DNA of 64,000 nucleotides from Salpingoeca rosetta (lineage: Eukaryota > Protista > Choanoflagellata), in contig JAWQFM010000010.1 of assembly GCA_033442325.1 (NCBI GenBank), positions 371,483-435,482 of the forward strand, in the 5' to 3' direction. The notes beneath the pieces are model-generated. The model made no database searches and was not told the DNA's origin. It saw nothing but the letters and a program-made list of their open reading frames with translations. The position numbers and the translations under genes are program-made. Below, piece after piece: positions 42,754 to 45,700 of the stretch. Every line of letters begins with the position of its first letter. Position 1 is the first letter of the stretch.

Positions 42754-45700
42754 ATGCCACCAATGGCGGCTAGATTGCCGCTGGCCTGGCTGACCTTGGC
42801 TCTGCCGCTGCTGGTGCTGCTGGTGGCGGTCCCACCAAGCCCAACAGCAGCAGCATCTGCCACACAGCCGGCCACAGATGCGGCCACGCAAATCAACGTC
42901 ACTGCCATGATTAACCAGACGCTTGTCGCAAGACAGACACCGCGCACCCTCCGAATCGGCTACATGGCCACGAGGTTCGTCGTGTGCTCCGATGTTCCTG
43001 ACATGTGCAGCTACTTGGCGTCTGGGATCCGACTTGTCGCAAACTGTACCGCCCCCTGTCTCTACGTACCTGCTTCAATCATCCACTCTTCACCATGCTT
43101 CGACCGCATGCTGAAATGTGTTAAACGTGCACGTGCACTCAAACTCCTCGACCTTTGCTTGCTCGACGTCACGATCACTCGTGTGTGTGTGTGCGTGTGT
43201 GTGTGTCTGTCTGTCTGTGTATGTGTGTGTACGTTTGTCTGTGTGTCTGTGTGTGCCTGTGTCTGTCTGTCTGTGTCTGCGTGCCTGTGTTTGTCTCGCA
43301 CAAACACACACACTTTCTCTCCGTCTGTGTGTTATCGCAGGAGCTTCTATGGCAAGTTTGTGATTGGCGGGTTCCTAGCGGAGCTGATCATGCGGGCAGC
43401 CAACGAGTTCTGGCAAGCGCAAGGGGACCAGATCCAAGTCGAGGTGAGTGACATGATTCATCCCATCCAGTGCACAAATGGGATCACGCCAGCGGCGTGG
43501 GATTGACTGAGTGAACAACGTGCTGGTTCTTGCATGATACACGCTCGAGTGGCGGGCGCCTGAGCTATGCATACACTGCGCTGCTGCATTGTTGTTGTGC
43601 TTCTTTGTTTGTTTGTTTTGTTTACCTCGAGCGCTTCCTCAACCCGCACCCGCCTACGTCTCGCATGCTCACCGACTGCTTTGTTCTGCAGCTCGTGTAC
43701 GGAGAGGCGTCCACGACCACAACAGAGTCTGCCAGCACGCGCTGCGCTGCAGTTGCCAACCAGCTCGTGCAGGAGGATGTGCACGTGGTCATTGGCCCAC
43801 CATCCAGCGCATGCTCCCAGCCGTCCGCCGCCGTTTTCGGGCAGGCAGGCATCCCTCAGGTGCGTCGCTTGTGCGTGTGCGTGTCTGTGTCTGTGTGCCT
43901 GCGTGTCTGTCTTGTCTGTCTGTATGTCTGTGAGCATGTCTTCATGTGTTGAGATGTGACGGTGTGGCTGTGTGTGTGTGTGTGCGTGTGCAAGCTCTTT
44001 ACTGCCTGTCCCTTTACCGCCTGTCTCAGTCCGCACCTCCCAACACAAATGTATGCGCCTGCTCCCCTTCACCTCCTCTGCAGATCTCACACAGCGCCAC
44101 CTCCCAAGCGCTCAGCGACAAGGACACCTTTCCGACATTCTTCCGCATCCCACCGTCGGGTACGAACACGATGTGCGTGTGCGTGTGCGTTTGCATTCGT
44201 GTGTGTGCGTGTGTGTGTGTGTGTGTGTGTGTGTGTGTGTGTGTGTGTGTGTGTGTGTGTGTGTGTGTGTGTGGTGTGTGTGTGTGTGTGTGTGTGTGTG
44301 TGTGTGTGTGTGTGTGTGTGTGTGCATCTCTCCCCCTCTCTTCCCGTATCTCTGTGTCTGCGTGGGTGTCTCTATTATTTACGCCCCACTCGGCGCTCCA
44401 CAGCATTGACCGCCAAACTCAAACTCCCACTCATCCTGATTTGCGCGCTGTCCAGATGCGCGCCAAGCAAAAGTGCTTGCAGGCATTGCCGCCGGCTGCA
44501 GCTGGTCCTCCATCGGCATCATTGGTGCGCTCGTTTGTTTGTGTGTGTGTGTGTGTGTGTGTGTCTGTGTCTGTGTCTGTGTCTGTCTGTCTGTATCTGT
44601 GTCTCTGTACTAGTGTGTGGCATCGTGGCCCTGCATCATTTTGCACACACAATGCATGCACGAGCACCGCAGTCGCCGCTACAGCTCATCTGCACACGTG
44701 CATCGACAGCCACGACGGACGCGTGGGGGCAGGGCCTGGTCAACACGCTGTACACGGAGCTCGCCAAGCAGAACATCACCGTCGGACAGCAGCTGCTCCT
44801 GCCACAGGTTTGTTGCATGTCTGTGTGCTGGGGGGTGGTTGTTGGGGGGTTGTGGGCTGTGGAGTGTGCGTGTGGCGTTGAGTTGCGACATGAAATGCAT
44901 TCAGCTTGCGTCTTTGATTGAACGCAGGCCCTTCTCACAACACACACGCATACACGCGCGCAGGGCCGACCGCTGGAGAACATCACGGCAGAGTTTCAAC
45001 AGTACAAGCGCAGCAGCGTCTCCAGCGTCAACATCCTCATCGCCCTTCGCGTCAGTTGTTGTAGGCATCTGTCTTGCATCATGATGCCTGCGTGCATGCA
45101 GGCATGTTCGCGAAGAGGTTGAGGGGTAGAGGCAGCAACTTCCCTGCCAAATTTGGCTCCGCTGACAACAACCTTTCGCTGCATGTGTGCGCTTGTGTTT
45201 CCAGGAGGATGCCATCCAGTTTGTGAGCGCGGCCATCGCTGTTGGCATGACGGGTCCAGGGTGGACATGGCTTGGTAAGAGATTAGCCAAAAGCCAGCGA
45301 AGTTGAGTGTGGTGTTGGGAAATGACTGAGTGCACATCCTGAAAAAGAGGCCACCAACAACTGTAACGACGCGTCTCATTCCCACGCACTCACGCTCACA
45401 CTCACTCACTCACTCACTCACTCACTCACTCACTCACACTCACACTCACACTCACACTCATATACACATACACGCGCACTCACTGGACAGCCTCTGACGG
45501 GGTTGCGACGAATACGGGCATCACGAGCGACCTGCTCGAGTTCATGGCGGGCATGGTTGGTGTGCAGCCCCTCTCTGTCAGCGGCCCGCTCAGCACCGCA
45601 TTCCACACCTTCCCAGACAGGTGCGTGTGTGCGTGTGTGCATGTGTGTGTGTGTGTGTGTGTGTGTATGTCTTGTCCGTTCGTGTCGACAATGGTGCGCG

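Follow-up and report, generated by a model that had tools for sequence, protein, structure and literature searches.

A Salpingoeca rosetta receptor tyrosine kinase whose class C-type Venus flytrap keeps the alpha-amino-acid binding signature of mGluR1

The window, a stretch of 64,000 nucleotides from the genome of the choanoflagellate Salpingoeca rosetta, contains two divergently oriented genes, RTK-A and RTK-B, each of which combines an ANF_receptor (Venus flytrap) domain with a tyrosine kinase. Our subject is RTK-B: a receptor tyrosine kinase that crosses the membrane once and whose ectodomain is one Venus flytrap of the type found in class C G-protein-coupled receptors (GPCRs). At the five positions with which mGluR1 contacts the alpha-carboxylate and primary amine of its ligand, this flytrap has serine, threonine, aspartate, tryptophan and aspartate.

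The spliced reading of RTK-B equals, throughout, the sequence of P0001, a database protein of 989 amino acids named “TK protein kinase [Salpingoeca rosetta]” and recovered by a search with exon 3 (100% identity over that exon). The sequence of the window is GC-rich, and short introns are packed with GT/CA microsatellites. Borders of the ectodomain exons, from 42754 to 46057, were taken directly from the sequence: all ten exons read in this way show GT..AG borders and consistent phases. The coding region and its parts are as follows.

42192..51432, + strand: whole RTK-B coding region, ~24 exons (tblastn of P0001 on the window)
42754..42974, + strand: exon with the probable true start M31, a hydrophobic signal peptide and the first flytrap beta strand, RIGYMAT (translation; GT donor at 42975)
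43341..43443, + strand: flytrap exon encoding a loop conserved in the family, RSF[YF]G, and helix 1 of lobe 1 (sequence, RNA reads)
43692..43859, + strand: flytrap exon with IGPPSS; codon of S177 (mGluR1 S165) at 43806-43808 (Pfam ANF_receptor positions 30-77)
44084..44159, + strand: flytrap exon with ISHSATS...FFRIPPS; codon of T200 (mGluR1 T188) at 44099-44101, first base of the D220 codon at 44159 (Pfam positions 78-102)
44456..44524, + strand: flytrap exon with the rest of the D220 codon (mGluR1 D208), then ARQAKVL...IGII (contig arithmetic, P0001, orthologues)
44710..44807, + strand: flytrap exon with TTDAWG; codon of W248 (mGluR1 Y236) at 44724-44726 (sequence, profile alignment)
44964..45050, + strand: flytrap exon of lobe 2 (joints 44804-44961 and 45050-45205, both GT..AG)
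45205..45274, + strand: flytrap exon ending in GPGWTWL and the first base of an Ala codon (sequence, contigs)
45491..45620, + strand: flytrap exon starting with (A)SDGV; codon of D330 (mGluR1 D318) at 45496-45498 (sequence, profile alignment)
45923..46057, + strand: flytrap exon with ...IPSFSSRLFDAV; codon of F386 (mGluR1 K409, mGluR7 K407) at 45966-45968 (mGluR7 alignment, hmmalign, contigs)
46205..46990, + strand: last flytrap exons and a short stalk, splice sites approximate (tblastn high-scoring segment pairs 46582-46680, 46913-46987 and 45921-46310)
47173..47241, + strand: single transmembrane helix LVIVVALLAV..., from P0001 residue 514 (open reading frame translation, motif position)
47672..50418, + strand: tyrosine kinase exons with VAIK (607), HRDLACRN (704), DFG (724) and PIKWTAPE (742) (Pfam, PDB matches, tblastn)

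RTK-B is expressed in S. rosetta. Coverage of the ectodomain exons by stranded RNA-seq reads (X21, X22) is confined to one strand, and GT..AG joints are reported by the RNA data for four introns. The joint 43441-43690 is seen as GT..AG in both reads and contigs; the joint 43856-44081, upstream of the exon at 44084..44159, comes from the same RNA data, and the last bases of the exon at 42754..42974 are read by loose ends of reads and contigs at 43339. In both transcript contigs, X4 (2791 nt) and X5 (2987 nt), the exons follow one another in order without any difference. Unlisted stretches of 69 letters in each contig fit the exons 44456-44524 and 45205-45274, counting an ambiguous border base.

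Two further features of the gene model were observed. The annotated start of P0001 lies 30 residues upstream of M31 (ATG at 42754) and is reached through an extra exon (42192-42233, 42703-42753); because a signal peptide behind 30 basic residues would be unusual, the true start is probably M31. The introns 43860-44083, 44160-44455, 44525-44709 and 45275-45490 carry microsatellites at both ends, GT/TG-rich where they start and CA- or CTCA-rich where they finish.

The preliminary description of this DNA had picked out five motifs as the seat of an amino-acid site, and all five are encoded on the + strand within 43692-45500. Three of them occupy one exon each: IGPPSS (43791-43808), ISHSATSQALSDK (44084-44122) and TTDAWG (44712-44729). 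The other two, FFRIPPSD and WLASDG, arise through splicing: FFRIPPS is encoded at 44138-44158 and the codon of the following D is divided between exons, with its G at 44159 and its AT at 44456-44457, while WL (45268-45273) is followed by a split A codon (45274 plus 45491-45492) and by SDG at 45493-45501. Both are contiguous in P0001 and in the orthologue transcripts of four other choanoflagellate species. Since P0001, the orthologue transcripts, the RNA reads and the two contigs agree, the intron-spanning motifs are real in the mRNA, and the five exist as described.

The order of parts in P0001 is a signal-peptide-like segment after M31, the flytrap, one hydrophobic helix (514-536) and the tyrosine kinase. 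Pfam assigns residues 147-458 to ANF_receptor (PF01094; 2.8e-41, 142.2 bits against a cut-off of 25.4) and residues 575-834 to PK_Tyr_Ser-Thr (7.7e-81, full profile length), with a further match to Peripla_BP_6 at 1.5e-14; the Pfam scan of P0001 returned only ANF_receptor, Peripla_BP_6 and kinase domains, with no 7TM_3 and no NCD3G. The kinase looks active, its sequence having intact GAGHYG, VAIK, HRDLACRN, DFG and PIKWTAPE motifs. Searches with single exons against Pfam and PDB give weak matches (E 0.27 to 4e-4) and were used solely to show that exons adjoin in the profile: exons 3 and 4 match ANF_receptor at the adjoining positions 30-77 and 78-102, and exon 4 alone matches T1R3, GABA-B and mGluR5 in PDB. 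Because the exons adjoin in the profile, and because the whole protein scores 142 bits, the flytrap similarity reflects homology and not chance.

In mGluR1 the ligand is held at its carboxylate by Ser165 and at its primary amine by Thr188, Asp208, Tyr236 and Asp318; these five, the residues tested here, are the main ones of the eight-residue motif of Acher and Bertrand (PMC2680970). To place RTK-B beside them we used an alignment (A2) of 11 flytraps: RTK-B, five choanoflagellate relatives, three tandem coral flytraps and two metagenome flytrap-kinase proteins. The best matches of its profile among PDB sequences are mGluR7, 4, 5, 8, 1 and 3, followed by CaSR (E 1.6e-38 to ~3e-34). The printed alignment with mGluR7 and mGluR4 sets the family Ser of G-P-x-x-S-x-C against the first Ser of G-S-S-V, the Thr of I-S-x-S-x-T-S against that of I-S-Y-A-S-T-A, the Asp of P-S-D against that of P-P-D or P-S-D, the aromatic residue of T-T-D-A-W/Y against the Tyr of E-G-S-Y-G, and the Asp of W-L-x-[ST]-D-G against the Asp of G-S-D. 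A single-sequence search likewise aligns the RTK-B motifs with ligand-contact columns of T1R3.

Profile alignment and offset arithmetic place S177, T200, D220, W248 and D330 of P0001 in the columns of mGluR1 S165, T188, D208, Y236 and D318. The mGluR1 numbering rests on the table row for 1ewk_A and on the start of the construct, the printed alignment having had T1R3 first. In that row profile positions 78-265 lie on chain positions 121-308, over equal lengths, and the profile positions are those of P0001:88-482, as checked by counting along the printed alignment. The crystallised 1ewk construct we take to begin at residue 33, a start that agrees with the 490 residues of the chain and with the range 42-512 given for it by VIA-align; the resulting offset of +75 from the numbering of the first sequence in A2 carries positions 90, 113, 133, 161 and 243 to 165, 188, 208, 236 and 318. 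Like arithmetic on the CaSR row gives 147, 170, 190, 218 and 297 (S147, S170, D190, Y218, E297), the residues of its L-Trp site. The change from Tyr to Trp at the mGluR1 236 position is a conservative aromatic one. The equivalences earlier drawn by eye (S, T, D, W and D) are thus right at all five positions, on the mGluR7/4 and T1R3 alignments and the 1ewk_A offset alike.

That the flytrap keeps a complete five-position site for an alpha-carboxylate and an alpha-ammonium group is the reason for predicting an amino-acid sensor: judging from the sequence, we lean towards RTK-B being gated directly by an L-alpha-amino acid or a close analogue, other than glutamate.

The predicted fold is consistent with this reading. 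An AlphaFold2 model made on A2 has a predicted local distance difference test score (pLDDT) of 85.6 and a predicted template-modelling score of 0.80, and describes a bilobed alpha/beta fold of the periplasmic-binding-protein type I, in its class C GPCR form. Foldseek matches this model best to the flytraps of mGluR5, mGluR3, mGluR2, CaSR and T1R (E ~5e-26, template-modelling scores 0.72-0.79). VIA-align gives Z scores of 39.0 for mGlu8, 38.3 for mGluR7, 37.3 for free mGluR1 and 36.2 for glutamate-bound mGluR1 (1ewk), with GABA-B flytraps at ~37 and T1R flytraps within 36-39; root-mean-square deviations to the mGluR, GABA-B and T1R flytraps are 2.5-3.3 over ~365 residues. S177, D220 and D330 each open a helix that comes after a strand in the model, T200 is in a loop past strand 107-109, and W248 comes second in the helix after strand 151-157. 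All five residues of the model sit where flytrap folds place ligand contacts, at strand ends or helix starts of the two lobes.

Relatives of RTK-B were found in Hartaetosiga balthica, Salpingoeca infusionum, Microstomoeca roanoka (two paralogues) and Barroeca monosierra, with 40-54% identity in the flytrap. S, T and D at the mGluR1 165, 188 and 208 positions are invariant in 11/11 flytraps of the alignment. The 236 position is aromatic in all 11, being W in 5/6 choanoflagellate proteins and Y in Hartaetosiga and the distant flytraps, and the 318 position is D in 9/11. Remote ANF proteins, CaSR-like fish receptors included, have S, T/S, D, Y and D/E at the five positions.

As to the wider family, outside the choanoflagellates the RTK-B flytrap has its closest relative in P0011, a protein of 1365 amino acids from the coral Oculina patagonica; it has three tandem flytraps, each with S, T, D, Y and D. 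Metagenome flytrap-kinase proteins (P0012, P0013, P0079) are ~1650-1700 amino acids long, and one has a 5_nucleotid_C domain.

The paralogue in the same window offers a comparison.

~30322-38069, - strand: RTK-A, divergently oriented paralogue with ANF_receptor and tyrosine kinase; the large exon at 34260-35225 (-) encodes an ANF segment

By hmmalign RTK-A has S, S, S and V at the 165, 188, 208 and 236 positions, so that only the Ser165 position is kept: its alpha-amino-acid site is degenerate, beside the intact one of RTK-B. Because RTK-A departs from it, the signature is not an automatic consequence of the flytrap fold. This bears on a further explanation, that the RTK-B flytrap has no regulatory ligand and acts mainly as a scaffold or as a module for constitutive dimerisation. 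Some ANF domains do act as such modules, those at the N-termini of ionotropic glutamate receptors for example, and N-terminal domains of NMDA GluN2B are among the weaker matches to RTK-B. Scaffold-type domains have, however, lost the five-residue site that RTK-B keeps across species, and the degenerate RTK-A fits such a role better; for RTK-B we regard it as highly improbable.

K409 of mGluR1 holds the distal carboxylate of glutamate. The column of this lysine (K407 in mGluR7) holds F386 in P0001, according to the mGluR7 alignment and hmmalign, and F, Y or A in the relatives. Since a phenylalanine replaces the basic residue, glutamate appears an unlikely ligand, and identity as a glutamate receptor was rejected. 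Venus kinase receptors (VKRs) have a strictly conserved Tyr at the K409 position, and on that ground those who discovered them ruled out glutamate (PMC2680970); the argument carries over to RTK-B. In the lobe 1 loop where a match to mGluR1 Y74/R78 was expected (P0001 105-110), RTK-B has a family-specific R-S-F-[YF]-G motif.

Several points weigh against direct gating by an amino acid. The predicted placement of the five residues in the cleft rests on sequence-profile equivalence together with the overall match in fold, and the loop at P0001 105-110 has low pLDDT and lies outside the profile alignment. Because all the related flytraps retrieved carry it, the signature is the ancestral default of this branch of flytraps, not a peculiarity of RTK-B. 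Both Microstomoeca paralogues have N at the 318 position. Lastly, CaSR keeps a like signature though an amino acid is only a co-agonist there.

The case of CaSR, which is among the best matches in sequence and structure and keeps the same five positions, brings in a different possibility: that the pocket binds an amino acid only as a permanent or permissive co-agonist, the trigger being an ion (Ca2+) or other small molecule. The schistosome receptor SmVKR2 is reported to be activated by calcium and not by L-arginine (PMC3703292). Against this, no acidic Ca2+-site cluster was seen in RTK-B, in work that included no search aimed at one, and a complete alpha-amino-acid site is most simply taken to mean that the amino acid is itself the agonist, as it is in mGluRs, T1Rs and AmVKR. 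We consider a mere co-agonist role distinctly unlikely.

It is also conceivable, if unlikely, that the signature was inherited while the ligand drifted (to an amine, a compound like gamma-aminobutyric acid, a peptide terminus or a bacterial metabolite), or that the pocket fell into disuse. The side-chain-selecting positions are unlike those of every characterised receptor (F at K409, no alignable equivalent of R78), the change from D to N in two orthologues fits such drift, and the GABA-B flytraps are nearly as good a structural match as any. Yet GABA-B-type receptors lack the Asp equivalent to D208 (...HPS in the alignment), which RTK-B and all its orthologues keep, and strict conservation of S, T and D across ~50%-identical orthologues argues for continued use of an alpha-amino-acid site. 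Direct gating by an L-alpha-amino acid or close analogue is the reading we prefer.

How does RTK-B stand to receptors already described? In insects, schistosomes and other invertebrates, L-amino acids and above all L-Arg activate the VKRs (PMC2680970, PMC3703292). The same authors drew attention in 2013 and 2014 to choanoflagellate receptors of this architecture, namely UTK12 of Monosiga brevicollis and RTKS of S. rosetta, with details unpublished (PMC3703292); the joining of flytrap, transmembrane helix and kinase in choanoflagellates is therefore already in the literature. Like VKRs, RTK-B has one flytrap, one transmembrane helix and one tyrosine kinase, keeps the serine of mGluR1 S165 and lacks Lys at the K409 position (Tyr in VKRs, Phe in RTK-B). 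There are differences, however. VKRs strictly conserve only the Ser, the other four residues being “less conserved” (PMC2680970), whereas conservation in RTK-B and its relatives extends to all five positions; and the VKR kinase is insulin-receptor-like, whereas that of RTK-B is not. The nearest solved and database relatives of the RTK-B kinase are PTK6/Srms, Fes/Fer, Lck, Eph, FGFR3, JAK and the choanoflagellate RTKC8, and the insulin receptor, IGF1R and VKR are absent from the best 60 PDB sequences and the best 120 database proteins retrieved with it. The flytrap query recovered no VKR at E <= 1e-3.

RTK-B thus works like a VKR in design, but orthology with the VKR family is unsupported because the kinase is not insulin-receptor-like and the flytrap recovered no VKR. 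On the first of these grounds a true VKR was rejected as an identity for RTK-B; an independent fusion of domains is at least as likely as VKR orthology.

Class C GPCRs (mGluR1-8, CaSR, T1R, GPRC6A) provide the best matches in sequence and structure and share the five positions, with Y changed to W. In contrast to them, RTK-B has no 7TM_3 domain and no cysteine-rich NCD3G linker, but a single transmembrane helix and a kinase output; with F386 at K409, it also offers no Arg/Lys pair to hold a distal carboxylate. The bacterial Leu/Ile/Val-binding proteins LivJ and LivK (Peripla_BP_6) belong to the same fold family, and IGPPSS of exon 3 aligns with ...IGHLCSSS... of LIVBP; the similarity is, however, far weaker than that to class C GPCRs, and LIVBP is a soluble periplasmic component of transport rather than a receptor.

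According to a 2025 survey, class C GPCRs of choanoflagellates carry ectodomains other than ANF (PMC12716839). A six-frame scan of the S. rosetta genome found at least 8 places that match ANF. Because choanoflagellate class C GPCRs reportedly lack the domain, yet the genome holds these places, kinase-coupled flytraps are the obvious home of this pocket in S. rosetta. At least 7 of the places are outside the window: C20:1021931-1022692, C34:189461-189916, C9:1822906-1823349, C9:1799842-1800276, C11:1547393-1547662, C13:155829-156140 and C1:3167660-3168010. RTK-B itself escapes the scan because its exons are short. Within the window a run of N at ~41450-41550, an assembly gap, lies between the two receptor genes in intergenic sequence or on the CIAO1 side.

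From the kept site and fold we infer ligand binding, ligand identity, dimerisation and activation of RTK-B. An L-alpha-amino acid or close analogue would bind between the two lobes; the lobes would close, the receptor dimer would then re-orient, and the intracellular kinases would trans-phosphorylate one another, as shown for animal VKRs. Of the earlier proposal that RTK-B is gated by an L-amino acid, the foundation stands, signature and fold both being kept according to the profile and the model, and gating itself is a plausible extension; that the ligand might be a prey- or bacteria-derived cue is pure speculation.

What is new in these details is the complete alpha-amino-acid site, conserved across species, together with a kinase that is not insulin-receptor-like. 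A bolder proposal starts from the reported lack of ANF ectodomains in choanoflagellate class C GPCRs: the ancestral mGluR-type pocket may in these organisms be coupled to a tyrosine kinase unrelated to the insulin-receptor-like one of animal VKRs. RTK-B would then be an independently assembled amino-acid-gated receptor tyrosine kinase, serving nutrient or prey sensing in the closest living relatives of animals, with a pocket better kept than in animal VKRs; this we put forward tentatively and hold to be doubtful. As it stands, amino-acid gating of RTK-B is a sound, testable prediction drawn by homology on a published architecture. If true, RTK-B would become the first choanoflagellate receptor tyrosine kinase with an assigned ligand, and there would be a direct way to study how signalling by phosphotyrosine is coupled to environmental chemistry in the sister group of animals. 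A class C-type amino-acid pocket would, moreover, have served a kinase output earlier than, or independently of, its use in the VKRs and GPCRs of animals.

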